Source: Aplysia californica
Taxonomy: Eukaryota
DNA: 64,000 bases
Direction: 5' to 3'
Assembly: GCF_000002075.1 (NCBI RefSeq)
Contig: NW_004797359.1
Location: 1,532,711-1,596,710, forward strand
Shown here: one piece after another, positions 9,629 to 62,800 of the stretch
Layout of the letters: every line of letters starts with the position of its first letter
How positions within the stretch are numbered: position 1 is the first letter of the stretch
The notes under the pieces: generated by a model
Told to the model about the DNA's origin: nothing
Database searches by the model: none
The model's input: the letters and a program-made list of their open reading frames with translations, nothing else
Translations under genes and position numbers: made by a program

Positions 9629-12379
9629 TTACAACTGAGGCTGGCAGTTGCTGTCCAGTTCTCGCGTCTGCTGTACCACCAAGACCTGGGGGGGCAGAGC
9701 CACACTGTGTCGGGTCATGGCCGGGTGGAGGGGTGCTTGCGGCGGCAGCGGGTGGGGGAAGGGCAGCCTCTGGTGCTGTGGCTGCACGCCGAGCTGCTGC
9801 TGGTGCTGGGGGAGCAGCGGGTGGTGGGCGTGGTGCGGGGGCAGAAGCTCCTGCAGGTGTTGGCTCGACGGCTGAGAATCAGCAACAGCGCTGGGCTGAT
9901 AAACTTGCTGATACAAGCGCTGCTGATGCTGTTGCGCTTCAAACTCTCGTGCTTCCACCTGTATGTGTAGAGGCGGAGGTGGGGGCGGTGGAAGACTGAG
10001 GGGTTGCAGCTCGAGCCGATTGTGACTGTCTTGCTGCAGGGGAATAAACGTCTGCGTCGCGGTGAGCAGAGTGGCTGTTGTCTCCCTGCTCACTTCCACG
10101 ACAGGAGGCTGCACGCTGGGCACAGATATCAAACGCTGGTGTCTTTGCTGTTGCTGCAGTAATTCACATTGCTGCTGTTGCTGCTGCTGCTGTTGCTGTT
10201 GTTCGTGTTGAAGCTGCTGTTGATACTGCTGTTCAGGCGTATCCCGATCTTGTTGAAGAGGTATCGTTTTGCTTTGCTCTGACTTCAGATTCCTCTCATC
10301 ATCCTCTTCTCTCCCACGTTGCACCTCGCCTTCAGGCACTTGTAACCCGTGTGACTTGACATGATTCCTAAAGGTGGAGAGCCACGTAAACGACTTCCCA
10401 CATACCTGACAGTGGTGTGGCTTCTCTCCCGTGTGTACGAGTCGATGGCGCCGCAATGACCACTTCACGGAAAAACACGCCCCGCAGATCTCACACGTAT
10501 ACGGCTTCTCCCCAGAGTGGGACTTTCGGTGGTTGGCGAGGTAGAACTTCCGCGAAAACTTCATACCACAATCCGGGCACTCGTGCTCCTTCACGGCCGA
10601 GTGGCGCCGTAAGTGAATGTTGAGATTAGTCCGTTGTGAAAAGCAACTACCACACAGCTCGCACACAAAAGACTTTTCTCCGGAATGCACAACAGAATGT
10701 GTTTTCAAGGACGCGCGGTCGGTGAAGCTCTTGTCACACCTGTCGCACTTAAAGCGACGGTCTCCTGTATGCAGCTTCTGATGACGGTACAATTCATAGA
10801 TTCTGTAAAACGATGTGCCACACAGGTCACAGGTGTGACCTTTCTGTCTGTTCGGGTCATGACGTTTCATGTGAGCTTTGCAGTCAGCTTTACGGGAAAA
10901 CGCCTGGGGGCAATGAGGGCATTGATACGGTTTCTGCCCTGTGTGACACTTCATGTGGTCTTCATAAGCGGAAGAACACGCCAGAGTTTTATCACAAATG
11001 GTGCAGTGGCAGGTGTGGATTTTCATGTGGTTCTTATAGGATCTTCGACCTACAAAGCTTCTTTTGCAAATAGCACAATGGTGGGTTTCAAGATGTCGAG
11101 CCATTGAGACTTTCTTTGGTTTGTATTCAATCCCTTTGTGTTTTGATGACATGTGTCTATGCAATTGGTGAGGATATGAAAACTTAGTTCCACAAATTTC
11201 ACATTCACATCGATGGATTTTTATATGCTTCAGGTACTCCCCCTTTTTCCTGAAGGATTTCATACAGATGCTGCAAGAGAAGGAGGTTTTGAGGGAATTC
11301 CCTTTACCGATTTGTAAACCATCTGCTGGTTTTGTAAGTCTACTAGGTTCATCTTTCTCCTCCTCTACACCCACAGGAACACTTTGGGGGCCAAGGTTAG
11401 CTTCTAAAATCTCACAACCTTCAGGTTCAATATTTTCATCGCAGTTATTCACTGGGATCTCTTCTTCCTCATCATCCGGAGGACATACTGACGGACTGTC
11501 TTTCCCATCACAATCCACAGACAGAATGTCCTCCTCCTCCTCTGCTTCCTCAGTCACATCAACAGATACAGGCACTGGCACATTCGATCGCTCTCTGCTT
11601 TTACAACTCTTTTTTGACTTTTTGGAGGGCTTTGACTGTGAGACACCTTTCCTCTTTGGTTTAGAAGCCCCTTCATCAACTCTCTTACCTGAATCTTTTT
11701 TCCGGTCCACGAGTCTTTGAGCTCTTTTCGAAGTTCTTGAACGTGTTTTCACGAAAACTTCTTGTTTTTTAGTCTGTGCTCGCGTTTTCCTAACTTTCAG
11801 CGGTTTCGGAGCCGCTTTAGATTCTGTGACTTTTTCTTTGAGATTCTCGGGTGTCTCATGCTGAGAAAACCTATCGAGAATATCTCTCAACGGCAAAGGT
11901 GGAGAACTTTTGACATACTGCTGAAGGGCTGAAGAGAACATGCCTTTTCTGACAAACTGTTCCTTGATGTACACAGCTTTGTTTTCTTCTAGAAACTCAC
12001 AGGACTCTGCAAGAACCTCGAGAGCTTTCAAATAATCTTCAGCCTCTTCATCTTTCCGCCGCAGTCTCCCGAAGAACACAAGTCGCTGGAATAAGACGAA
12101 AATGTAAGGCAAACACAGATCTTCCAACCTTTCCATTAGAGTCATCAACAAAGAAGTATCCCGTTCACTGACATTCAAAGACTGTACTATATCTCTGAAT
12201 CCTCTCTTGCTAGCAAAGCTCAGTAAAACAGAAGTACAGAGTCTATCACCTCTGTCTGACATTTCACTCCCACTTTGACACATCTCACTCTTCATCTCTC
12301 TCCAGAGAGTCAAAACAAGACATTCTAAAGCTAAGCTCCCAGGGAGCTCTTGGCCTAAGACTTTGATACTTGACCCCAT
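9629..12379 (-). CDS. C2H2 zinc-finger protein (916 aa, 11 fingers) with a diverged retrotransposon Gag-capsid-like N-terminus and Q/P-rich C-terminus (ZNF-A)
   Basis: Uninterrupted ORF with 11 CxxC..HxxxH units and TGEKP-type linkers. ATG is in AGGATGG context with an in-frame TGA just upstream; candidate acceptors at 12511-12512 and 12438-12439. aa ~25-175 align with the Gag-like region of ZNF-B. Confidence 0.93.
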   Translation of the reverse strand: MGSSIKVLGQELPGSLALECLVLTLWREMKSEMCQSGSEMSDRGDRLCTSVLLSFASKRGFRDIVQSLNVSERDTSLLMTLMERLEDLCLPYIFVLFQRLVFFGRLRRKDEEAEDYLKALEVLAESCEFLEENKAVYIKEQFVRKGMFSSALQQYVKSSPPLPLRDILDRFSQHETPENLKEKVTESKAAPKPLKVRKTRAQTKKQEVFVKTRSRTSKRAQRLVDRKKDSGKRVDEGASKPKRKGVSQSKPSKKSKKSCKSRERSNVPVPVSVDVTEEAEEEEDILSVDCDGKDSPSVCPPDDEEEEIPVNNCDENIEPEGCEILEANLGPQSVPVGVEEEKDEPSRLTKPADGLQIGKGNSLKTSFSCSICMKSFRKKGEYLKHIKIHRCECEICGTKFSYPHQLHRHMSSKHKGIEYKPKKVSMARHLETHHCAICKRSFVGRRSYKNHMKIHTCHCTICDKTLACSSAYEDHMKCHTGQKPYQCPHCPQAFSRKADCKAHMKRHDPNRQKGHTCDLCGTSFYRIYELYRHQKLHTGDRRFKCDRCDKSFTDRASLKTHSVVHSGEKSFVCELCGSCFSQRTNLNIHLRRHSAVKEHECPDCGMKFSRKFYLANHRKSHSGEKPYTCEICGACFSVKWSLRRHRLVHTGEKPHHCQVCGKSFTWLSTFRNHVKSHGLQVPEGEVQRGREEDDERNLKSEQSKTIPLQQDRDTPEQQYQQQLQHEQQQQQQQQQQQCELLQQQQRHQRLISVPSVQPPVVEVSRETTATLLTATQTFIPLQQDSHNRLELQPLSLPPPPPPPLHIQVEAREFEAQQHQQRLYQQVYQPSAVADSQPSSQHLQELLPPHHAHHPLLPQHQQQLGVQPQHQRLPFPHPLPPQAPLHPAMTRHSVALPPQVLVVQQTRELDSNCQPQL

Positions 12380-13420
12380 CCTGGCAAGTCTTCCTCACAA
12401 TGGAGCCGATTCACTGAGTTAAGACATTCGCAAAAATCTACAGGGACAGAAGAAGGGAACACGCTTCCACAGTCCTGGATCCAGGCCCAACATCATTGGC
12501 TCGACACAACCTGGGAAAAAACCCAGAATAAAAATATCAAATCATCAGGGCTATTTGGTGTATTTTTCTTTCAATCAGGGTGGGAAGGATATAACTTCAC
12601 AAACTTTCCTGAATCTCTCTACAAGACATGATGAGCACACTAGTAGTAAGTTCTTTTTCTTCATTTATCCACAAATATAAGGTATTTGAATAAAATTTTT
12701 GTGTAATATATATTTTTAAATTTAAATGGCATCTCTGCTTGATCGATACTAAAATGTTTATTCCATCATCAATGCAGAATTTATACTAAGTAGGAGGCTG
12801 GCTGCAGTAACACAGCCTGTCAGGGCCAACCCTGCTGTGTTGGACACTGCACCCTAGCAGAAAAACTAGAGATATATAAACTTTGACACGCAGGAATGTA
12901 ACTCAAATCTTAAGTGAGAGCTACAGAGTGAAAAACTAAGCCATTATTATATTATTAATACCACATCCACATACACCGGTAATTTTTTGGATTTCGTTTA
13001 AAGTGAATTACAAGAAATTATTGGCCTAAATCCTACAAAAAGTAAAGATATTCATGGGTGGAGTGAAGGCTACATGACATATATTGTGAAGCTTCCCCTA
13101 ACCTATGTACTACAGTCGACTCCACTTGTGATTGTGTTGAACTCCCTTGAGTTGATCTTTTTCTCGGGTTTCAGAACCTTTCTTTGTTTCTTTACAGGTC
13201 CCAAAGGTTAACTTTAACCTCAGATGAGTTTATCTCTCCCCCCCCCCCCCCCCCCCCCCCCCCCACTATTTAATGATTTTGTACTTACTGTAGCAATTCT
13301 ATTCATTTTTGGACTTCGCTCTTTGAAAAGTTATGTTTACTTGGCAGGGAACACAATTGTCATGATGCATCCCCATCGCTTACTAGAATGCTTTACAATC
13401 TTTGCTTTTCAGTGGCAGCG

Positions 13421-14398
13421 ATGGATACTCAGCTGCGCTCAGAGTGCCAGGGTCTTCTGGAGCAGCTGAAAGCTTCCCAGCGGCTGTTGACTGAACAGGT
13501 GTCTTCCCAAATGGGACGAGTGACTCTTGCTTCTAGTCAGAGATCTGGTGTCTCAACTACTTTTGATGACCGAGACCCCATTATTAGTTACAATCTAAGT
13601 AAAAATGCGAGCAAAAAGTCCTCAAAATGGAAATTTGGCAAAGATATCACAGCTGACGTTAATGTAGCTCAGGAGGCTGATACTGACCTCAAGCCATCCT
13701 TAGCCAGAGACAAGTTGTGTAGTCTGGCTAAGAGTCGAAATCGCCATGACAGCTTAGCCAGTGGGCTTAGTACTCAAGACAGCTTTAAACCAGGGAAGGA
13801 AAACTGTAATGTAGCAGACAGAACTTTAGGATATGACAGTCGTCCTTTATTATTATCATCATCAACCTCGTTGCTTGAGGGCAGAACCGCACTCTCAGAC
13901 TTCTCAAAGAATGAGATGGCATCTGTGGAAGACAATAATGCCGTGACATCCTCTTCCTGGCAGCCAGCAACGCCCATCACTCAGAGAAGACGTCAGCTCA
14001 TAGATCGTCACACTGCCGTACCCACCAAGCTCAATGCTAAGGAACTCAGAGATCTAGAGAAAGAAAGGTATTTGAATTTCAGCTACTCACACATTGAAGT
14101 TGATGATCATGTGACCCGCCTCAAGTCAACAGGGGACCTTTCTGAACCTGAAGAAACAGAGACTGGTGATAAAAAGACACAATCTTCATTTTCTACCGAA
14201 CATTCGCCTGCTGCATCTCATCTAACAAGTCTCCCCGATCGTGGTCCCACCAAACCTGAAAAGCAGGAGAGCTTCAATTCGCAGCTTCTTGATGATGGGA
14301 ACAATCGTAAGCTCAGCAAGTTTGTGAAGGAAGCTGCAGTGAAACCCAAGAGCATCCTCAACTCCAGCGCTTACTACAGCTTGAATTCAAGCAAGAGG
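13421..14398 (+). CDS. MIIP: MIIP coding exon 1
   Basis: Acceptor AG 13411-13412, ATG 13421, donor GTAAGC 14399; 326 open codons. Confidence 0.8.
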
Positions 14399-17300
14399 GT
14401 AAGCAAAAATATCTTATAAAATTTACTGGAACCATCCTCAAAGTTTTTCCTTTTAACCTGAAATCATGTGAGTTAAAAAAACAAAGATGAAAAAAGAAAG
14501 TATGACACGTATAAAAACTGTATGATTCTCTTTTTAGACATCTGTATTCTTTCTTTTCAGAAATTCAAGAAGAGAGATTTTTACCATTAATTACTGAACT
14601 TTTACAATCATGTTACTTGAATAGGCCTACTGAAAATAACATCAACTGTGACGTATCTAAATGCACTCTCTTGTCTTGATTTTTGCTGCATGATGTAATG
14701 AATGATGATATGATGATATCTGTCTGTCTGAATTTGTATTAGATTTAAATGAATCTGACTCTAGAACCATACTCTAAAACCTTGGATGTCTAGTATTTTG
14801 TGACATTGTTCTGACTTTGCCGTTCACCGTTGTCTGTTCCCAGAACAACTCAAGGGTACGATTCAACTCGTCTCAGTCCAGTGACTCCCAGACTCCACTG
14901 CCGGACCATCGCCTTCTCGGCTATGACTGGATTGCTGCCCTGCTGGACAATGACTCAGCTTTGATCAATCAGTCTGAGAGTTTCTTTGATGAGTTGAGGG
15001 ATTTTCGCAGAGCCAACAAAGACGAGTGCTCCAACCAGTTCTACATGAAGTAAGTGTGGATACGTCAATTTTTTTAATGTTTTGGGCTTTTTGGTTTTTA
15101 TTTTGATTCCTTGTTGACTGACTTATGTTGCTGATTAGATAGCTTTGATTGTTAGCCGCTAGTGCCTGTGATGTAGTAGTTAGGCTCTTCGCAGTTCATG
15201 CTGAAGACATTAGTTTCAATCTTATGTTGGGATGTCATTTTATCAAGTATCTTGCCATGTCCCCTGGGATCACGGATGCTAGTTCAAAGACATTTAAAAA
15301 CCTAAGCGGTAATGTGGGAATTTTCAAAAACCTGAAAGTCATCGTACAGAAAGATAAGATGGCAAAGACTACAAAAAACTAGTTTTAACATATGGGCCTT
15401 AAGAGGATAGGGGCTTTTTCAGGACTACTCTTCTGCTTCAAGACTTATCGTTTTGCATGTTGCGTAGTCGCCAGTTTTTAAACACGTACGTGCCGGCCCC
15501 AGTCTAAAAAACCTGCAGACCTAGGTCTGTTGAGGTTAAAAACCAGCGGGGCCGGCATATGCTGTATCCCGCCTTAAGCAGGTGGAAACAGCCTATGTCC
15601 TAATTGGTGTGAGTTGTATGAATGGAGACATGAAATATATTAATTGTGTAATAATTTGATTATTGGGCCATCCTCAAAATATGGAACATGTGTTTGTATT
15701 CTAAATGCTAGCTCCGACATTATAAAATCCATGCAAGAAGGGAAGATGACAGAAAGGGCAAGAGGGGAGATAAAGAGAAGTTGAGAAACCGTTTTGCTTG
15801 CAGGACTATGGAACCAGATATCTCACCCTCGTCTCATAGTTGTTTGCTGGTTTTTATGGATAAAGAGCTTCTTTTTTCCCACACAAACAAACAAATAAAC
15901 AACTATGCATCGTGTACAATCCTCAGAGGCCCTCACACCCTGGTGGACACAGAACCTTCTGAGGTGGTTGAGGCTCTCACGGAACCAAGTATGTTTGGGT
16001 TTTTTTTGTGTGTGTGTTTTGTGTTTTTTATATGAGTCTCAAACGTTGTCTGTGAGTTGTTGGCGGGTGCTCTGGTGTAGTTTGTTTCTTCTTTCCTATC
16101 AAACATCTGTTGTCCTTATCTCCCCTCCTTCTTTCTTGTGTATGTTACTCTCTTGTAACACATAATCCATTCTTCGGCACTTATATGACCTTATTGTGTT
16201 GCAAGTGCGTAAAACGCTTACTAAGACTAAAACTAAAACATTGTCTAGTATATCTCAGAAGTGCCAATTTTCCCTGATAAATCTTGAAATCCGGATGTCT
16301 GAAAATGTCTGGATTTTTACTGACTTTTACGTGATGTCATACTGCACTTTGTTCGAAAATACTCGTGATGGAATTATATTTAGAGATGTATTGATCAATA
16401 CAATCAGTAAATTTTGAGTATTCACACACATGCATTTCCACAAGGGTGCAGAAAATTTCTAAATTTTATTGTAGCGAGTTGGCATCTCTGCTGTTTGTGT
16501 TTTTGTTCTTGCTTTTCTCATTGTATGCAATATATCTGTAATGTGTTCTTAGATTGACTCTGTGTGTGGATGTATTGCGTTCTTTTAAATGAAAATGTTT
16601 GTGTGTATTAAGTCTCATAGACAAATATCTATTTATTCCTAGTGAACTCGTAATTACATGTACTTTTTTTGCTATTCACGGAGAAACCAAAATTTTCATT
16701 AGGCCTACTGTCTCTTATTACCAATTAAAAAAGAAAATTAAAAAAATATATTGTTAGTTTGTGGAAAAGATGATTTATTATGGTCATAGTTTTGATATGG
16801 ATTTACTCTGCTGCCTTCATTCAGAATTGTAAGTTCGAGGTAGTTACATGAAGATTATTTTTTTCAGAGGTTCGTCCTTACATTGTCAATGACAGACTTT
16901 TCACGGAGCCGTTTAGACCCAACCTTATCCCTTACGAAGATGAGGATATACCTCAAAGGCAGAAAAGCAAAGAGCCAAGTAAAGATAACCCTAGATTTGT
17001 CAGGTAATGTATTTTTTAATAATTCTAGTCATCATCATTATTTGATATCATCTTATTTGGTCCTTAATTTCTAATTGAATGTGCTGTCAAATCTACTCTA
17101 ATTGCAACCTGTTCAAGACAAACAAACTCTTCTCTCCCTCCCCCCTTTCCTGCTCCCTTGGTTTTGAAAAAATATTATAACGACATTGTTTTTAGATGTC
17201 TGCTAGTCTTACACAACTTTCCGCCTGAAGAGTGGGTGGCCGTCTTGGACAATTTCAACTATATTTGTGTCACGACGAGATGGAATCAGGGGATCGTCAG

Positions 17301-37848: not shown

Positions 37849-40275
37849 AGAGTATTAGAGGTGCTAGAGGTGTTCCAAGAGAATAACAAACCTTAAAAAA
37901 GGAGGAGAGATCAGGATGGTAAACTGAATGGATAGGAAAGCAGGAGTAAACCACACAAGAGCACCCACCAACCACACGCAATAGCTTGTCTACACTTGCC
38001 AATAACTCATGTACTGGTACTAGCACTTTACTAGACTAGGAAGGTGAGAAGTGACACGAGGAGTGAAAAATCTTCTTATATTATATTTATTATATATATA
38101 CATGCATTTTTCATGAATTATGAATCTGGGACGAACTCTTAGCAGACAACACTGTCTACTAGCTGTTCCATGGCCTGCCTCTGAGCTCCTCATAACTTTT
38201 CTTTTGCAGAAGCTACAAAGTTTTTATGCAAAAATATCAATAATATTAGAAGCCAAGCTAAAGAAGATTCTAGAACAAGTAAAAAAAAAAAAGAAGTGTA
38301 CTGTAAACCACATGTTAGCTCTTGCTTTCCTTTCACCTTTAATGACAATTAACAATTTATTTTCAAAACTTTTTTGTTCATTAAAGATTAAATGGTTCAT
38401 TAACATGGGAGACAGTCGATAACAACATAAGAAAAAGAAGTAATCAAACACTTGAACTTGAAGTTGAAGGGCATGAAGAAATAAATGTGAGGCATCATGG
38501 TGAAATCAGGGGCCCGTCAAAATAATGAAATCAAAGAAATCGACATTTTTCGGAGTTTGGAAATTTTTATTTTAAAAATTTGGGGGGGGGGGGCTCAACA
38601 CCTTGTATTTTGTACGTCCATTCAGATACACTTTTATGAGTGGATTGTATGGAACAATGTTGATTAAAGGCACGAAAAAATGTAAATTAGCTGTTTACAA
38701 GGACTCTTGAGCTACGGAAATCACCAAACTTTGGCAGCCATTTTCTTGCTTATATTTTATTTCTGAAACAATGCAACCCCACCTCTTTCAATCCCAAATA
38801 TATCTCAGCTTCTATTCAAGATAAATGGATATTTTTTTCATTGAAAGCAAGGCAAATGAACAAACTCTAAGATGATAATAATAACAATAATAATAGATGG
38901 CATTTGTATAGCGCATATCCCCGCTCAACAGCAGGCTCTATGATACCACCAATAACTCCATAATATGCCCAAAATTTGACGAGTGCCCGATTCCACCGTT
39001 TTGTGACAGAAATTAAATAGAAAACATCATGTTCAAAGATCCACCAAGCCAAACAGTAATCCATTTCAAGTTGAAATGGAACTTCATTGTAAGCTGCAGA
39101 TGTTTAAAATAATGTTGTTTTCAAACAATGGTGTTCCACTGTAGTCTTTATTTGACTATATAATGCTGATCTAATACAAATAAATAATATTGAAGTCTGT
39201 AGGCTGCAGTATGTATACAATAAATATGCAATGCTTCCACTTCCACGTTGTAAAAAAATTTACTGTGTAACCTGCACATGTTACCAATTACAACAACGAG
39301 TTTTCACTGCACGCTGCCTATAATATAATGTTTACAATGAATGCTTTATCTTGAGAAGAGTTAATTGTTCTCTAGTCGGCACAATAATGATGCCATTTTC
39401 TGTAGAATTTCACAGTAGTCTGCACACACAGTCTGTATAATATACCTCTATAATAGATCAACATGTTAACCAATAAACTGCTTTCCAATAGTAGGATTTC
39501 ATTGCAGTCTGTACTATCGGCTGCACAAGTTCAGAACATTCCATGGAAAGTGACACAAATAAAGAGGAGGTGATGGCCTACTGAAAAAATCCTGTGCAGT
39601 GAGAGTTGAAAGAGACAAAGGATAATTCCGGCACATAATTATTTGCTTGAGTAAAGACAAGCGTACTGTATATAATATTGGAAAAACAATAGGCCCAATC
39701 CGATAGACAGAAATGAAAAGTCAGATTGATAGACACAGATGCGCGTACAACAGAGAGTGAGAGAGAATGGAGGAAGTAGGATCTTTCAGTAGCACCCTCC
39801 AACCAAGAATGTATGAGCCAAAAAATGTGAATGGGGGACTGTTTTGATCCAAAGAATCTAGTGCTTGATCCGATTCTCTTGTATGTCATATTCTAAACTA
39901 AGGCTAGATCCACTAGAACTGAGAAACCTGAGTGTCACAATTCTTCAAAAAGAAATTTGTTTTTTGTGCTTTAAAAAACCCCCAAATCAATTGACCATGA
40001 TGTAGCCTATCAGGAAAAGAAGGTGACAGTGGATAAGGCACATTCTTTTACAATTTTGGAAGCCAGCCCACAATGTAACAAGGCAAAGCTGAAGGCAGAA
40101 TCCCCAAGGGAGGAAGAAGAGAGGAAGGTCGAGATCCAACTGAAAACAAGCTCCGATTTTCAAGGAGGATCTCAGACTAAGACAGATAGAGGGAACAGCT
40201 GACTGGAGGTAGTTCTAAAAGATTGCCCAGAATAGAATAGAAGTGGGAGCCCTTCTTGACAGTCTTTACCAAATT

Positions 40276-40339
<64 letters not shown>

Positions 40340-40397: not shown

Positions 40398-43300
40398 TCA
40401 AGTGGCCAAGGTGTAGGTGGCGTGGGTCTGGGGATGGAGGTTGGGGGAGTTCATCTCCGAGTGTACGACTTGTCTGTGGAGGTCAGCCGACTGGCCCAGC
40501 TGCTGAAGGTGAAGCAGGTCAGAACCGGCGGTGGGCACTTGCTGCAGGTGCTGTTGCAGCTGCTCCAGCGGCTGACTCAGGGTCGGCTGCAGCTGTATTC
40601 TATGGGGGTCAGAGGTCAAGGGAGTTAAAGGTTGCAGCTCAGCATGATGGTGGAAGTTGGCGCCAGTATCTAGGCCGAGGGTACCCGTGCTCCCAGCTGT
40701 TGGTTTTCCTGAGAGCTGGAAGAGCAAAGGAGGGGCTTGTAGGACAGAGGCAGAGCTGAGGGGGACCCTGGTGTTACCACAGGTGATGGAGAAGCTGCTG
40801 TTGCTGCTGTTGCCAATTACATCGAGGAGATTTTCTGGAGCAGAATGGTTCAAGACTGGTGTCTGCTGTAGCGGCTGCAGAGTCTGATGATGTTGCTGTT
40901 GTTGCTGCTGATGTGGCTGTAGAATTTGCAGCTGCTGATTATGATCTGTGGTCAGTGCGGGCGGGTTGTGAATGCCATGCGTTCGTTTTAAGTGCTTGAG
41001 CACCGAGGAGCGCTTCGTGAACCTTGTGTTGCAGATGTGGCATCTATGAGGCTTTTCCCCCGAGTGCAGACGTTCGTGGCTTCTCATGTGTGAAGAGCAG
41101 GTGAAAGCCTTGCCGCAGACACCGCACTTGTAGCGTCTCTCCCGGTTGGAGTCGTGAGTCTTCATGTGATCACGGAGATAACCTTTCAGGGAGAATCTCG
41201 CACTACAGATGGGACATGAGAAAGGTCGTTCTCCTGTGTGCTTCCTCACATGTCCTTCCATGTGCGACCTCTGCAAAAACTTCTGGCCACAGATCGGGCA
41301 CTTGAACGGCTCCTGGCCACTGTGAATCTTCATGTGTTTACTCAGCTGGTGGTTCTCGCGGTATGACGCCCCACAGAGCGAGCACACAAACGGACGCTCG
41401 CCCGTATGTTTCATGAGGTGGAGTTTGAGCTTGCAGGAGTGAGTGAATGACAGGCCACAGAACTCACACGAGAATCTATCTGCAGGCTTCACACCTTCAT
41501 GGATTCTTTTCACGTGTTTTTTCATGCTGGACATCTGCGAGAAAGCCATGTCACAAATGGTGCACTTGTACGGCTTCTCTCCCGTATGCTTTCTCTCGTG
41601 GTTGCGAAGCTGGTACGACTTGAGGAACGCTGCACCACACGTGGCACAGACGTGGGGTCGCTCTCTGTTCTGAGAGTGGATCTTCATGTGATTGCGGAGG
41701 TAGTAGGATAGCTTGAAGCTGACTCCACATACGTTGCAGGTATGCGGCTTATGATCGAGGTGGGTCTGTACATGGTTGTTCAAGGTCGTCTTCAGCAAAA
41801 ATCTTCTCCCACAAGTGGCACACTCGTGTCGTTTCTCCCCGGTGTGAATGTTTTTGTGATTGATCAAGATGCTCTTCTCTGCAAATGAAGCTCCACAGAT
41901 TTCACACATGAAGGGCTTGGTGGCGTTGTGCTTGCTCATTGCGTGCAACTTCAACTTTGAAGGGTACTGGAACTGCACCCCACAGATATTGCATGGGTAT
42001 CTACTAGTGCGATGTTCTTTCCGCCGGTGCTGATTGTATTCCTGCATGCTGCGAAAAGTCAGATCACAGTCTTCACATTTCACTTTTTCCTCTTTTGAAT
42101 GGGATACTTTATGCTGATCTAAAGCTCTCTGACTGTCAAAAGTCATTGGGCAGTTGGCACATTTGAACGTGAGAGACTCTGGATGTTCCTGGCGCATGTG
42201 TTTGGTGCGGTGAGACGAGCTGAGAAAATTCACACCACAAATGTCACATTTGTTGACTTTCTTCCTGGAATGAGTCCGTTGTACATGACGCTTTAACAGG
42301 TTCCTCGTGGCATAGGAGGAACTACACTCTGAGCACTTGTGCTTGGCATTTTTCTGTAAGTCTCGCCTAAGGGGCAAATTTGGTCCACATGTAATACTGT
42401 CTCCACCATCTTCTGGGTGGCTTGCTGAAGAAATACACGACTCAAGTTTATTGACCTCTAGGCAGGCCTGTCTTTCATTTACTCCCACTGAGTGAGAGCT
42501 CACGTTGTTTTCAGGTACTCCAGAAGAGAGATCCACATCATCTTCAGAGAGATACATGGTACCCAAGAGGCTTTCCTGATACTCTTCTTGACGTTTCATT
42601 TCAACACTCTCTTGCTTGGGACTGTCTATGCCATCAAATGTGCTCGATACATCATTAAGTTTGGGCCCAGTTTCACTCTGACCCTGAACTGCATCTTTTT
42701 TAAACACACGACAGATGACAGTTTCTGAGGATGACTCGTCCTTTGAGACTTTCTGTTCAGCTACATCCACATCAGAGACGCCGTACCTGACCACTTTCTT
42801 CACGTTACGTTTGGGTCGTCCAGGCTGAGTGACAAGGCCAGAACCAGATGTAACAGCTTTCCTCTCACTTCTTTCATTCCGGTCACAGCTCTCAGCATGG
42901 ACATGTGTCAGATTATCACCATTACCCCTCACTGCAGCATTATTGTTCACCAATGGATTACAAGATGAAGTGTCAACATTTTCACTATCACTGTCACAAT
43001 TTTCATTAAATGATAACTTCACTTGCAGACCAAACTTAGCACCTTGACACCTTCCAAAATCTTCAGAGGCAAAATTCAAACAGGTAGCTATGATTTGTTG
43101 AAGATTAACTTTATCCACACTTTGCAACTTTTGTCTCAGTTTTTCATCTCTCACTCCCTTCACAATTCTGGAAGACAGATACCTCTTTTTATGCTCCTCA
43201 AAACAACAATTGTCTGCCAGAGACAAGAGATCTACGATAAATGAGTGAACACTTTCATCATTGCCTTGACATCGGGTAAAAAACTTATGTCTTTCATACA

Positions 43301-43601
43301 GCAACAAGAAGCCAGGAACACAAAAATGTTCAATCTCTGTCAAAATATTTTCAAGCTCTTGTGGTTCAATTCTAATCTTAGAACTTGACAAATGGCTGTT
43401 GATTCTTTCCAAAAGCAGTTCACTCCCTCTGAGTAAGTATCTAAAGATGGAAGCTGTAGTGGCATGAGGAGTGAAATGAGATCTGTCAATTGCTGGCACA
43501 TTTTGACAGAAGAGTTGAAACCTGGCCTTGAGGATGGTCCATCTGCTGGAATCTGGCAAATCCTGGGAGCTCTTCTCGGGCCGCTGAATAGCAAACTCCA
43601 T
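40398..43601 (-). CDS. C2H2 zinc-finger protein (1067 aa, 16 fingers) with an N-terminal Ty3/Gypsy Gag-capsid-like domain and Q-rich tail (ZNF-B)
   Basis: Uninterrupted ORF with 16 C2H2 fingers. GCCATGG start with an in-frame upstream stop; polypyrimidine tract plus AG acceptor at 43657-43658. N-terminus contains HFCVP..YERHKFFTRCQGNDESVHSFIVDLLSLADNCCF..RIVKGVRDEKLRQKL. Confidence 0.95.
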   Translation of the reverse strand: MEFAIQRPEKSSQDLPDSSRWTILKARFQLFCQNVPAIDRSHFTPHATTASIFRYLLRGSELLLERINSHLSSSKIRIEPQELENILTEIEHFCVPGFLLLYERHKFFTRCQGNDESVHSFIVDLLSLADNCCFEEHKKRYLSSRIVKGVRDEKLRQKLQSVDKVNLQQIIATCLNFASEDFGRCQGAKFGLQVKLSFNENCDSDSENVDTSSCNPLVNNNAAVRGNGDNLTHVHAESCDRNERSERKAVTSGSGLVTQPGRPKRNVKKVVRYGVSDVDVAEQKVSKDESSSETVICRVFKKDAVQGQSETGPKLNDVSSTFDGIDSPKQESVEMKRQEEYQESLLGTMYLSEDDVDLSSGVPENNVSSHSVGVNERQACLEVNKLESCISSASHPEDGGDSITCGPNLPLRRDLQKNAKHKCSECSSSYATRNLLKRHVQRTHSRKKVNKCDICGVNFLSSSHRTKHMRQEHPESLTFKCANCPMTFDSQRALDQHKVSHSKEEKVKCEDCDLTFRSMQEYNQHRRKEHRTSRYPCNICGVQFQYPSKLKLHAMSKHNATKPFMCEICGASFAEKSILINHKNIHTGEKRHECATCGRRFLLKTTLNNHVQTHLDHKPHTCNVCGVSFKLSYYLRNHMKIHSQNRERPHVCATCGAAFLKSYQLRNHERKHTGEKPYKCTICDMAFSQMSSMKKHVKRIHEGVKPADRFSCEFCGLSFTHSCKLKLHLMKHTGERPFVCSLCGASYRENHQLSKHMKIHSGQEPFKCPICGQKFLQRSHMEGHVRKHTGERPFSCPICSARFSLKGYLRDHMKTHDSNRERRYKCGVCGKAFTCSSHMRSHERLHSGEKPHRCHICNTRFTKRSSVLKHLKRTHGIHNPPALTTDHNQQLQILQPHQQQQQQHHQTLQPLQQTPVLNHSAPENLLDVIGNSSNSSFSITCGNTRVPLSSASVLQAPPLLFQLSGKPTAGSTGTLGLDTGANFHHHAELQPLTPLTSDPHRIQLQPTLSQPLEQLQQHLQQVPTAGSDLLHLQQLGQSADLHRQVVHSEMNSPNLHPQTHATYTLAT

Positions 43602-44310
43602 GGCTTGTTAATGGTAAGAAAGTTGTGGTTCTTCCTTCAGTTCAGCTGGTCACCATCTGAAAAGGAAAAAAAAAAATCTTAGTATGGTATAATGTCAAAA
43701 TATTTGTTAAACAGGATGACAAATTACCACAGCTAACACTTTTAACAGTGTTGTCGCCGGTGGCAACTTGATTTTAATACAAAATTATAGCTGTCTTGCA
43801 TAACTCACAAGTACACCAAGACAGAATGGAAACTGATAGAGGTACAATCAGTCACTTCGCACCTTGTGTTTTTTTATCTTTTCTAGATGAGCTTTTAACT
43901 TTGCCTTCAATTTCTTTGTCTCCTTAATAATGCATCACTCTTGAAGTCTGGTATTGATCAAAATCTGGGCCATCCTGCTCAGTTCTTCTGCTGGCCCCTA
44001 CAGCTACTGTCAATGGGGTTAGCCCAGTTTCCAATCTCAATACTAGCATGTTGGTGATTGAGCTAGTTCAAAACATACAAGTATATTGTTGTCTATTATA
44101 ATGAGACTTTCCAAGACATCCACCTGTCTAATATTGTACAATCACTTTTCTCCTCAAAAATGGATGTCTGTCTAGGGCAATTTTGACTGTAGTTTACAAA
44201 CCCTTTTTCCAAAGTTAATTTAGCATGAGGAAAGGACATGATTCAAACAATGTAAATTGTAATGCTTATAATTTACGCAGTGGCTACGTTCACGGCGCAG
44301 TGAATGTAGT

Positions 44311-45302: not shown

Positions 45303-46073
45303 GGAAGTGGCTATCCTCACCCGGGGTGAGAATAAAAATACGATCTACCTCTCACCCCGGGTGAGATATGTCAGCGTTGGCTATTCTCACCCGGTGTGAA
45401 ACAAGACCTGTTTTTCCTACTTTCGGAATACTGTCTATCGGTGTGGATGATCAAATTGACATAAGCAAAGAAAAAATGACGTTATAGCACAATTTAAGTA
45501 AGCTAATTTGAATTTGATCGCCAATAAAGATGCAATGGCTATTTCACTTTTCGAATCGAGCCAAGCTACGGGTGTCGCCATTTTGTTTTGCCCGCAAGTT
45601 CTCACAAGATCTACTCTCCTCCCCTCTCTCTGTCTCTTTCTGAATACTGTTTATCGGTGTGGACAATCAAATTGACCAAAACAAAGTTTAAAAATGATGT
45701 TCAAACACAAAAGTAAATTAATTTGGTCGTCTACAACAGACAAAGATGCTACTGCTATTTAACTTTTCGAATCGAGCCGAACTACGTGGGTCGCTATTTT
45801 GTTTTGCCCGGAAGTTCTAGCGCGACTCCTCTCTCTCTTGTTCTCTCTCCACTGCCCACAGACAAAATTGCAGGCTTTTAGGCTAACAGTAGTAACACAA
45901 GAGCGCTGGAAGGTTTGTTCACGGCGCAGAATTCTACATTTCTGTTATCACAGAGTAGAATTCCGTGGTTCAGGGTGAACGCTACACTTTGGACTTGGTT
46001 GACCCAGGCTATAGATTCTAGCTAGCGGTGAACGCACACCGGGTGAGTATAGCCAAAACTGGGCTCGCCATTC
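45303..46073. mobile_element. MULE-like element family F copy
   Basis: Collinear with 32088-32839; perfect 9-bp TSD ATTGTAGAT at 45294-45302 and 46074-46082. Confidence 0.75.
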
Positions 46074-46077
46074 ATTG

Positions 46078-46370
46078 TAGATCTAGATCTAGATCTAGAT
46101 TCTAGATGTAACTGTACTGTATCAGTATCAGAGTAGATCTAGATCTAGATCTATCTAGAATCTAGACAGATCTACCACTACCACCGGTATCGCCAGTATC
46201 GGCGGTTCAGTGCTAGAAAAACGAGAAAAAATAGAATTTTTCAGTTCAGTCAAAGATGCCGACTGCCCTAAAATTTAGTAGATCTAGAATCTAGATTCTA
46301 GATCTAAATCTAGATCTAGAATCTAGATCTAGTAAAAGTCTTTACTCTAGAATCTAGATCTAGATATAGA
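46078..46370. repeat. (TCTAGA/AGATCT)n palindromic microsatellite cluster
   Basis: Runs of AGATCTAGATCTAG; smaller clusters at ~45097-45112, 45210-45226 and 31484-31507. Confidence 0.85.
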
Positions 46371-46417
46371 TTACATATTTTAAAATATTGGGTGTACGAA
46401 AAGAACAAAGGCAATAC

Positions 46418-59811: not shown

Positions 59812-62800
59812 GATCAAGGAGGACTTACAGAGTCCTTTCTCCCCACAGAGTGACAAGTTCAACAATAGCTGCAGTATATGAGCTGTCGCTGGAGACAGAG
59901 AGAACAAGTGTTAACGATGTAATGAACGAGCCATAGCAAAAATGAGTCGTTAGTTTGTGTGAGTAAAGAGATGCACATCAAAACAATAACGTTCATTTAC
60001 TGCTGGGAAAAAAGTAAGAAAGACAGACAGAAACAACAGAGGAGAAATAAATAAATAGCACCTACTAGTGGCACCCTCTAATAACCATTAAATTTTTTAA
60101 AATCAGTTGAAGCTGGAGAGAGAAGGAATGAGTCTAATAACTCTACCAGCTATGATAACTTTATCTTCTCTGATAGCTCTATGTACTCTAATAACTTTAC
60201 CATCTCCTTTAAATTTACCTTCTCTGATAACTCTATGTACTCCAACAACTTTACCTTCTCTGAGAACTCTATGTACTCCAACAACTTTACCTTCTCTGAT
60301 AACTCTACGTACTCCAACAACTTTACCTTCTCTGATAACTCTATGTACTCCAACAACTTTACCTTCTCCGATAACTTTAACTTCTCTGATAACTCTGTGT
60401 ACTCCAACAACTTTACCTTCTCCAATAATTTTAACTTCTCTGATAACTCAATGTACTCCAACAACTTTACCTTCTCTGATAACTTGGTGTACTCTGATAA
60501 CTCTATGCACCCCTATAACTCTATGGACTCTGATAACTTTACCTTCTCTGACAACTCCGATAACTCTATGTACTCTGATAACTCTAGGTACTCCCATAAC
60601 TCTATGTGTTCTGATAACGCTATGTACTCCTCCGATAACTCTATGTACTCTGATAGCTCGACATACTCCGATTACTCTACCTCCTATAATATCTCTGATA
60701 ACTCTACCAACTGTGATAACTCTACCTTTTCTGATAACTCTACCTCCTCCAATATCTCTATGTACTCCGATAACTCTATATAATGTACTCTTCCAATAAC
60801 TCTATGTACTCCGATAACTCAATATACTCCGATGACTCTACCTCCTCCAATATCTCTATATACTCCGATAACTCTACCTCCTCCGATATCTCTATATACT
60901 CCGATAACTCTACCAACTGTGATAACTCTACCTCCTCCAAAACCTCTATATACTCCGATAACTCTACCTCTTCCGATATCTCTATATACTCCGATAACTC
61001 TACCAACTGTGATTTATATTCTTTGTACTCTGATAACTCGATTAGTCCGATAACTCTATGTACTCTGATAAAGTCTTAGTTGTTTTTATGTCCCCATCTA
61101 TACAATTAAGATCATTTGGGAGGCCAGCCTCTGACCCTTCCTGTCATGTCAAAGCCAATGCGGGTAGAGAGGGATACATTATCCCAACAAAAACTTTAGT
61201 TTTAGTAGGAGTTTTACAGCACTTGCAACACAATAAGTTCATATAAGTACCGAAGATTAAAAGTGTTACAAGAGAGTAACAAGCACAAAAAAGAAGGAGG
61301 GGAGATAAAGACGATAGATGTTTGATAGGAAAGAAGAAGAAAACCACACCAGAGCACCCGCCAACCACCTATCCAGCAGAAAGACAGAGATACTATTAGA
61401 TCTAGATAAAAATTTATTCTCCCTCGGGAATCAAGCTAAAGTTTCCTGTGTACAACAGCGAGGCACCTAACCGCTACACTATAGACACCAGTCTGGCTGT
61501 CTGTCAACATACACAGCTACTTGTCTTTCAGTCTGTCAACGTACACACCTGCCAGTCTGTCAACATACACACCTGCCAGTCAGGCAACATACACACCTGC
61601 TAGTATAACAGTCTGTCAACACACACACATATTTGTCTTTCAGTCTGTCAACATACACACTTGCTAGTCTGACAGTCTGTCAACATACACACCTGCCAGT
61701 CAGGCAGTCTGTCAACATACACACCTGCTAGTCTGACAGTCTGTCAACATACACACCTGCTAGTCTGACAGTCTGTCAACATACACAACTGCTAGTCTGA
61801 CAGTCTGTCAACATACACACCTGCCAGTCAGGCAGTCTGTCAACATACACACCTGCTAGTCTGACAGTCTGTCAACATACACACCTGCTAGTCTGACAGT
61901 CTGTCAACATACACAACTGCTAGTCTGACAGTCTGTCAACATACACACCTGCTAGTCTGACAGTCTGTCAACATACACACCTACCAGTCAGGCAGTCTGT
62001 CAACATACACAACTGCTAGTCTGGCAGTCTGTCAACATACACATCTACCAGTCAGGCAGTCTGTCAACATACACATCAGCTAGTCTGACAGTCTGTCAAC
62101 ATACATACCAGCTATTCCGGCAGTCTGTCAACATACACACCTGCTAGTCTGACAGTCTGTCAACATACACATCTGCTAGTCTGACAGTCTGTCAACATAC
62201 ACACCTATCAGTCAGGCAGTCTGTCAACATACACATCAGCTAGTCTGACAGTCTGTTAACATACATACCAGCTACTCCGGCAGTCTGTCAACATACACAC
62301 CTGCTAGTCTGACAGTCTGTCAACATACACAACTGCTAGTCTGGCAGTCTGTCAACATACACATCTACTTGTCTTTCAGTCTGTCAACATACACACCTGC
62401 CAGTCTGACAGTCCACTAGTCTGACAGTCGGTCAACATACACACCTGCTGGTCTGGCAGTCAGACTGGTAAGAGAAAGCACACTGTAGAATCACGTCCAG
62501 CGCAAGTTTGTCAATCAGATCAAACAGTTCAAAAGCTTCTTCCTTGACTGAAAACGCTTCCATTTTCGTCTGGAGAAAAAAAGGTTTCTATTACCAATTG
62601 AAGTACATCTTGTAGCCCACATGATGTCACAGCACAGTTTAAATCTAATAAAACTGACTTGATGGATAAGTCATTGATTCTTTTACTCGTTACAATTAAA
62701 TATTACTAAAAATTTATGTCAACGACAACAGTCTACTTAAATTATGCAGCCTGACACACTGATAATCCAGGGAGTTGGGAGCCAATTGCTTATTCAAAAC

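Follow-up and report, generated by a model that had tools for sequence, protein, structure and literature searches.

A C2H2 zinc-finger gene of Aplysia californica that very probably carries a domesticated Ty3/Gypsy capsid domain, with relatives in other heterobranch gastropods

A 64-kb stretch of the Aplysia californica genome (contig NW_004797359.1, positions 1,532,711 to 1,596,710; the whole stretch of 64,000 nucleotides is hereafter the window, and coordinates refer to it unless another record is named) contains the zinc-finger gene ZNF-B, which is the subject of this analysis. In the list of open reading frames (ORFs), ZNF-B is a complete single-exon coding sequence of 1067 amino acids plus a stop codon on the minus strand (40398..43601), and its protein consists, in order, of a capsid (CA)-like domain, a linker, 16 C2H2 zinc fingers and a Q/H/P-rich tail. 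The N-terminal domain is very probably a domesticated Ty3/Gypsy CA that has been fused to the C2H2 fingers. An earlier reading of the locus, referred to below as the original prediction, had described an intact ORF with a Kozak start and 16 C2H2 fingers, and this description is accurate. The reading frame is uninterrupted over all 1067 residues, the ATG at 43599-43601 has the context gccATGG with an in-frame stop three codons upstream, and the fingers are found both with a regular expression and with Pfam. A protein identical to ZNF-B (P0151; P numbers designate individual proteins) is called on NCBI record KB941485.1 of GCA_000002075.2.

All parts of ZNF-B lie on the minus strand. The CA-like domain (aa 1-185; 43047..43601), delimited from phmmer alignments, an AlphaFold (AF2) model and fold matches, begins at the initiator methionine as retroelement Gags do. 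The original prediction gave its range as 43060-43601, which corresponds to aa 1-180, and the residues that it quoted are there as written. The AF2 model divides the domain into an N-terminal lobe (aa 17-94; 43320..43553) with four predicted helices (17-34, 45-57, 61-74 and 80-94) and a C-terminal lobe (aa 97-185; 43047..43313) with five predicted helices (97-109, 118-132, 135-149, 153-160 and 167-185). The C-terminal lobe is the part of the domain best conserved relative to active Gags, and the best phmmer stretches fall at aa 79-175. The linker (aa 186-420; 42342..43046) is rich in S, V, E, N and D, and neither a recognised domain (Pfam) nor a CCHC remnant (motif scan) was found in it. The 16 fingers (aa 423-875; 40977..42335) are placed by regular-expression positions and by Pfam zf-C2H2 and zf-H2C2_2; across the whole protein Pfam reports C2H2-type families only, from about aa 421 onward. 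The tail (aa 876-1067; 40401..40976), taken from the ORF list, ends in YTLAT, an ending common to the orthologue P0006.

The 500-nt flanks of the ZNF-B locus are free of N runs. A polypyrimidine tract followed by CAG (43657..43676, minus strand), 56 nt upstream of the ATG, is the putative 3' splice site that the original prediction had noticed, and if it is used as an acceptor, a non-coding first exon further upstream is implied. A four-codon upstream ORF (ATG GTG ACC AGC TGA; 43642-43656, minus strand) directly follows the putative acceptor and lies 40 nt before the ZNF-B ATG. On the other side of the gene, a perfect (GA)30 microsatellite (40277-40336) starts some 60 nt past the stop codon, within what is presumed to be the 3' untranslated region, and the first AATAAA/ATTAAA signal is found about 1.2 kb beyond the microsatellite, at 39152. 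Upstream of ZNF-B, at a distance of about 2 kb, lie two tandem copies of an approximately 216-nt unit that are 86-87% identical (45420-45818), and arrays of the (TAGATC)n type occupy 46078-46372.

The evidence that identifies the N-terminal domain comes from an exhaustive phmmer search in which ZNF-B aa 1-200 was compared with 1.84 billion cluster representatives. The search returned 1858 matches at E<=1e-3, 33 of them at E<=1e-10, with the best at 3.7e-20, and at the level of sequence the resemblance of the ZNF-B N-terminus to Gag is far beyond chance. The top matches are long polyproteins that align at their own residues ~68-160, i.e., at their N-termini, and the Pfam domains in the matched polyproteins are RVT_1, RT_RNaseH(_2), Integrase_H2C2, rve and a retroviral-type aspartyl protease. 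The type of element was defined from three clean single-ORF elements only (P0133, P0120 and P0158), in which CA (aa ~15-170) is followed by protease (PR), reverse transcriptase (RT), RNase H and integrase (IN), the order of Ty3/Gypsy elements. Six of the top-scoring 'K02A2.6-like' polyproteins (P0001, P0003, P0004, P0092, P0109 and P0128) are evidently chimeric gene models whose domain order is untrustworthy; chimeric models among them mix two Gag regions, Gypsy and Copia RT, a Tc5 transposase helix-turn-helix or phospholipase A2. The Gag capsid origin that had been proposed for aa 1-180 is supported by these matches, as is the claim that both capsid halves are covered. Many alignments span query aa 1-176, reaching from the Gag initiator methionine to the last CA helix, and both capsid lobes are present in ZNF-B.

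Identity between the ZNF-B domain and active Gags is about 30-38% at best in the phmmer alignments, and the residues P96, F107, Q112, C132 and G149, near-invariant in active Gags, are kept in ZNF-B. The start of the gene is also the ancestral gag start, since ZNF-B, its orthologues and many active Gags all begin with ME. The possibility that Q112-G-x-x-E-x-x-x-x-F represents a major homology region was considered and then rejected. In an alignment of 58 sequences, the short homologues run on from CA into CCHC knuckles, whereas ZNF-B does not. Pfam detects Retrotrans_gag (PF03732) in eight of these 58 aligned homologues (best 3.4e-5) and PNMA (PF14893) in two.

The predicted structure of the domain resembles that of known capsids. 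A model made from the single sequence was unusable (predicted local distance difference test, pLDDT, 40.7), and the alignment-based AF2 model was used instead; its pLDDT is 80.6 overall and >90 for aa 100-180, and it has nine helices (4+5). The CA of Ty3 consists of a four-helix N-terminal domain (NTD) and a five-helix C-terminal domain (CTD) (Dodonova et al., PMC6525542), a layout with which the helices predicted for ZNF-B agree. The approximately 50 best PDB matches listed by Foldseek are retroviral or domesticated capsids (CA of HTLV-1, HIV-1, FIV and EIAV, and PNMA2, MOAP1 and PEG10), and the top Foldseek matches, nearly all of them capsids, have probabilities of 0.97-1.00. The top 20 fold matches in the BFVD viral library are all retroviral Gag. 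The matches that involve the CTD only, to the CA-like CTDs of MOAP1 and PEG10, have template modeling (TM) scores of 0.67-0.70 and a root-mean-square deviation of 3.1-4.8 A.

Several results nevertheless count against a capsid identity. ZNF-B aa 1-200 has no Pfam match at E<=1, Retrotrans_gag (PF03732) and PNMA included, and a single-sequence PDB search of the N-terminus produced nothing better than GET3 noise (E about 1). The best PDB match of the profile built from the 58-sequence alignment is the Drosophila Arc1 (dArc1) capsid, with a non-significant E of 0.69. The best Foldseek E values are 1.1e-2 (PDB) and 4.6e-3 (BFVD), none being <=1e-3, and whole-model TM-scores are 0.3-0.46. The low whole-model scores may reflect the orientation of the two lobes relative to each other. 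A search of the N-terminus against PHROGs produced noise only. The profile and structure comparisons proposed in the original prediction were therefore borne out in part: the fold matches are nearly all capsids, but their E values stop at about 1e-2, the profile match to dArc1 is not significant and Pfam is silent. The modelled fold agrees in kind with a capsid but by itself falls short of significance; homology is argued chiefly from the sequence search, and the ZNF-B domain is linked to curated Gag models only transitively, through its aligned homologues.

Multicopy retroelements are the closest relatives of the domain in sequence, and one possibility is that ZNF-B is part of a mobile element, or a chimera of assembly or annotation, rather than a host gene. 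This possibility is effectively excluded by the structure of the locus and of its orthologues. The ZNF-B protein contains no CCHC knuckle and no YxDD motif in a motif scan and no pol-type Pfam domain, and no LTR-like long direct repeats (LTR, long terminal repeat) were found around the gene in 34-50 kb of the window, in keeping with the original prediction that knuckle, protease, RT, integrase and LTRs are all missing. A profile search in six reading frames found two CA-like sequences in the window, and both head zinc-finger ORFs, ZNF-B and a second gene, ZNF-A. ZNF-B is the sole member of its protein cluster, which is represented on a single contig. In all three species in which loci were read (Aplysia, Physella and Elysia), the genomic DNA contains the ORF unbroken, in each case as a single exon, and the 16-finger architecture is orthologous across species. 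In Physella the gene sits among ordinary host genes (NSUN5-like, TPR and amidohydrolase). A tblastx comparison of the Physella locus (±10 kb) with the window for synteny matched only the zinc-finger gene itself. Full orthologous ORFs are carried by Logan contigs of about 4 kb; when these contigs were examined as possible spliced cDNAs, no poly(A) was found, and their 5' difference from the Physella genome resembles an indel and not a GT-AG intron. The Gag part and the fingers lie in one exon, and any expression of the gene would therefore yield a transcript that contains both. ZNF-B is a host gene and not a mobile element: the retroelement parts have been lost, and the fingers of its orthologues in other heterobranch gastropods are 67-68% identical.

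The fusion of CA to zinc fingers is not confined to Aplysia. A census of the family was taken from the best 150 of the 1858 phmmer matches and is a lower bound, as divergent members such as ZNF-A fall below the cut. CA lies ahead of a C2H2 array in P0009 of Physella acuta (XP_059141748.1, annotated as 'zinc finger protein 540-like'), in P0051 of Plakobranchus ocellatus (annotated as 'Zinc finger protein 84'), in P0135 and P0089 of Elysia crispata, in P0091 of Candidula unifasciata, and in P0006 and P0104 from Logan contigs, and P0005 is a partial Lymnaea stagnalis protein of the same capsid-headed family. The fusion is thus kept in at least six species of slugs and snails (Aplysia, Physella, Lymnaea, Elysia, Plakobranchus and Candidula). 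ZNF-B, P0009 and P0006 are orthologue-grade, having 16 fingers each, fingers that are 67-68% identical and about 30% identity over CA aa 1-174. Compared with ZNF-B, P0009 is 68% identical in the fingers and 32% in CA; P0006 is 30% identical in CA and 67% in the fingers by regional global alignment, or 54% by a longer BLAST alignment that includes the tail, and it shares the YTLAT end. A word-indexed homologue search with ZNF-B aa 1-200 returned the protein itself only, and the same type of search with the Physella query returned one relative, P0166. The suggestion in the original prediction that ZNF-B is an 'invertebrate' counterpart of the vertebrate SCAN zinc-finger proteins (SCAN-ZNFs) holds in that the family lies outside vertebrates, and its range is narrowed to heterobranch gastropods.

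The second CA-headed gene of the window, ZNF-A (9629-12379, minus strand), is a paralogue of ZNF-B on the same strand and about 28 kb away. It encodes 916 amino acids, with a CA-like N-terminus (about 11840-12379) and 11 C2H2 fingers (10349-11275). Its N-terminus is 31% identical to that of ZNF-B over 91 aa (E 3e-11) and 20% identical in the family alignment, and Pfam found nothing in it. The CA of ZNF-A is very divergent: its branch in the tree has a length of 3.16, and another residue stands in place of the near-invariant Q. Between the fingers of ZNF-A and those of the rest of the family, identity is only about 35%.

Phylogenetic trees were inferred from 185 profile columns of the CA region. 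In a quick tree of 148 rows, all finger-linked CA domains, together with P0044, form one clade with an SH-like approximate likelihood ratio test (SH-aLRT) support of 93. P0044 (Logan contig, 819 aa) has an N-terminal CA (MEFELSF...) followed by about 640 residues of low complexity, without zinc fingers and without a Pfam domain; it belongs to the zinc-finger-linked CA clade and groups with the Elysia and Plakobranchus genes. An IQ-TREE analysis of 67 rows (10 clade members, 45 nearest Gags and 12 spaced others, omitting the near-identical P0153, P0155, P0159 and P0160 as well as low-coverage sequences including P0089) recovered the clade, with ZNF-A inside it, at an ultrafast bootstrap (UFBoot) support of 99 and an SH-aLRT support of 99. 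As the finger-linked CA domains form a single clade, the trees suggest a single capsid capture. A caution is that the domesticated copies are long-branched (3.16 for ZNF-A and 1.6 for ZNF-B), and long-branch attraction could inflate the support for monophyly. Supports for the sister group of the clade among retroelements are only 60 and 11, too low for a particular donor family to be singled out. The identified hosts comprise Aplysia and members of Hygrophila, Sacoglossa and Stylommatophora, and with this range the capture dates back at least to the common ancestor of these heterobranchs.

A further question is whether the CA domain is maintained for a function of its own. One alternative is that it is a passenger, which supplied a promoter, 5' exon and start codon at the birth of the gene and has since persisted upstream of essential fingers with little function. 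The intact ORF proves nothing on this point, because a frameshift in CA would also destroy the fingers, and selection was therefore assessed from sequence divergence. Among the deep orthologues (ZNF-B, the Physella protein and P0006), CA is 30-34% identical and its global alignment scores are z 16-21 above shuffles, while the linker of the same ORF is 13-17% identical with z of -1.3 to 1.1, i.e., fully randomised. Retention of similarity in CA beside a randomised linker argues against a passenger.

A closer pair, Physella acuta and the Logan contig protein P0166 (domain 83% identical, overall dS 0.30), was used to estimate dN/dS (omega) with the NG86 method, and the dN/dS results rest on this one informative species pair. 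For aa 1-175 omega is 0.44 (bootstrap 0.23-0.92; P(omega>=1)=0.018), for aa 1-140 it is 0.23 (bootstrap 0.12-0.51) and for aa 1-95 it is 0.19; the linker, fingers and tail have values of 0.37, 0.06 and 0.27, respectively. Three Elysia loci were also compared, but their dS of 0.01-0.05 represents too few changes to be informative; two of these loci are in one assembly and are probably haplotigs, and the third is from the Elysia crispata genome. Two features of the physid data do not favor a maintained domain. The constraint on CA is modest compared with that on the fingers (0.44 against 0.06) and close to that on the linker (0.37), and aa 141-175, which form the last two CA helices, have 13 replacements and no silent changes (Physella acuta L006:10421-10525 against L007). 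The excess may represent relaxation or positive selection, and it comprises 35 codons in one species pair.

The similarity of omega in CA (aa 1-175) and linker, along with the high divergence of the ZNF-A copy (20% identity to ZNF-B, branch 3.16), is what a passenger might display. On the other hand, the upper bound for aa 1-140 is 0.51, the near-invariant Gag residues listed above persist in ZNF-B, the family alignment supports a confidently predicted fold, and the fingerless clade member P0044 keeps its CA domain. We therefore consider it unlikely that CA is a passenger. Neutral evolution, which the original prediction had raised as an argument against itself, is not what the deep z values and the dN/dS of 0.44 (aa 1-175) and 0.23 (aa 1-140) indicate: the CA domain clearly does not evolve neutrally, although the constraint on it is far weaker than that on the fingers.

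On the whole, the explanation that we find reasonably probable is that ZNF-B is a host protein that binds DNA sequence-specifically, with a domesticated two-lobed Ty3/Gypsy CA as an interaction module. In this scheme, a C2H2 array in a heterobranch ancestor would have acquired the 5' stretch of a gag ORF that begins with the gag start codon and stops where CA ends, with the nucleocapsid knuckles and pol excluded at the fusion. The fusion gene would then have duplicated to give rise to ZNF-A, ZNF-B and the other paralogues in sacoglossans and land snails. The CA domain may function in protein-protein interaction, with homo- or hetero-oligomerisation of family members through CA-CA contacts as the likeliest form, and such contacts would multimerise finger arrays on DNA or recruit partners to the sites read by the fingers. 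Given that the capsid fold is self-associating and that SCAN, its only known counterpart among zinc-finger proteins, is a dimerisation domain, oligomerisation is the most economical function, and by this analogy we lean slightly toward it.

An alternative role for the CA domain is defense against retroelements. The domain could bind the Gag of active Ty3/Gypsy relatives and either poison assembly in a dominant-negative manner or tether the elements, and the fingers may target element DNA. Fv1, enJS56A1 and Ty1 p22 are precedents of the dominant-negative type. Such a role would agree with the retention of both CA lobes and with the still detectable similarity of the domain to many apparently intact Gag-Pol elements, and the 13 replacements without a silent change in aa 141-175 of physids are the pattern expected of a surface engaged in an arms race. 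Capsid-derived restriction factors are indeed known, Ty1 p22 being an example (PMC4599808). The fingers, however, are strongly conserved (67-68% identity among deep orthologues, omega 0.06), which fits fixed host targets better than the fast-changing targets that transposons would present, and the replacement excess amounts to 35 codons in one species pair. A primary role as an anti-retroelement factor thus appears improbable.

It has also to be considered whether ZNF-B still forms particles resembling capsids, in the manner of Arc, PEG10 and PNMA2, and bears its fingers as an appendage. The protein has both CA lobes, unlike SCAN, and its structural neighbors include the assembling capsids of PNMA2 and PEG10. 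Against this, some 880 residues follow CA, including a disordered linker of 235 aa and a DNA-binding array, there is no nucleocapsid, and the domain has diverged far from active Gags (about 30-38% identity at best). Particle assembly as the function of ZNF-B is very unlikely, and an interaction module in a DNA-binding protein remains the reading that we prefer.

The remainder of the window contains few features of note. A Ser-rich ORF of 343 aa (13388-14419, plus strand) lies between ZNF-A and ZNF-B on the opposite strand and has no Pfam match at E<=10. The stretch at 60107-60799 (plus strand) is highly repetitive, with long overlapping ORFs made of the repeats, and is probably a minisatellite rather than a gene; it coincides with a strongly negative GC skew (-0.34) in 60-62 kb. 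Ten runs of N, each 100-458 nt, fall within 1110-36218, in the first 36.3 kb; none of them touches ZNF-B, and four lie 4-6 kb downstream of it. Scans of the window for tRNA genes and Rfam families found nothing.

The closest parallel to the gastropod family is provided by the SCAN-ZNFs of vertebrates, which to our knowledge are so far the only instance in which a retroelement capsid has been recruited as the partner domain of a C2H2 transcription factor. SCAN goes back to the CTD of the capsid in Gmr1/Gmr30-like Gypsy elements (Emerson & Thomas 2011, cited in PMC8321522; bioRxiv 10.1101/2025.03.03.638093). The two families are alike in having an N-terminal Ty3/Gypsy-type capsid module and a C-terminal C2H2 array in a duplicating host family from which nucleocapsid, pol and LTRs have been lost. 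They differ in that SCAN-ZNFs carry the CTD alone, whereas the gastropod family keeps the N- and C-lobes from the Gag start codon. The gastropod family also represents an independent event in another phylum (heterobranch gastropods), lacks KRAB and is small so far, with at least 10 representatives as compared with dozens of SCAN-ZNFs per genome. SCAN (PF02023) was not found in ZNF-B at E<=1 or in the 58-sequence alignment at E<=0.01. With no member matching Pfam SCAN, the comparison made in the original prediction is apt as convergence only.

Other domesticated capsids resemble ZNF-B in a different respect. Arc/dArc1, the PNMA family, PEG10/RTL and MOAP1 are host genes that have lost pol and LTRs but retain a bilobed CA under selection, and PNMA2 (8rb3), PEG10 (7lga) and MOAP1 (7lgc) are among the top structural neighbors of ZNF-B, while dArc1 is the best PDB profile match (E 0.69). 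Arc, PNMA, PEG10/RTL and MOAP1 are essentially Gag alone, however, some with nucleocapsid or protease, and several of them assemble capsids. In ZNF-B, by contrast, CA accounts for the first 17% of a protein that binds DNA, and it stems from another capture event in another host lineage. Gags of active 'K02A2.6-like' Ty3/Gypsy elements (Metaviridae) are homologous to ZNF-B over aa ~1-176 and have the same ME... start, the same order of blocks and the same predicted 4+5 helices, but downstream of CA the elements encode CCHC knuckles, protease, RT, RNase H and integrase, where ZNF-B has a linker and 16 C2H2 fingers. Among N-terminal domains of zinc-finger proteins, KRAB serves to recruit KAP1, whereas ZAD binds zinc and mediates dimerisation. 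Neither these two nor FiNZ is derived from a capsid. They are similar to the gastropod CA as clade-restricted N-terminal domains joined to tandem C2H2 fingers in locally duplicated genes, with KRAB in tetrapods, ZAD in insects and FiNZ in cyprinid fish (10.1101/2025.03.03.638093).

No account of an invertebrate capsid-C2H2 fusion turned up in full-text literature searches, an absence that is no proof that the family is undescribed. A eukaryote-wide survey of gag co-option (Wang & Han) makes no mention of molluscs. Because Pfam fails to detect the domain, these genes carry no annotation beyond 'zinc finger protein 540-like' or 'zinc finger protein 84'. With a profile derived from the gastropod family, the genomes of gastropods would be better annotated, including those of the neurobiology model Aplysia and of relatives of schistosome hosts among the Hygrophila.

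A second, independent capture of a capsid in molluscs, in this case of the whole capsid, would show that the fusion of capsid and zinc fingers is repeatable in evolution. The gastropod family would then offer a natural comparison for asking what a DNA-binding protein gains from a capsid fold, be it oligomerisation, recruitment of partners or defense against transposons. It is conceivable, if doubtful, that these capsid-headed transcription factors still form CA-CA lattices or engage the Gag of active elements, with the fast-evolving last helices of the CTD as the interface of conflict. If that is the case, sequence-specific DNA binding would be coupled in these gastropods to capsid-type assembly or to retroelement restriction.

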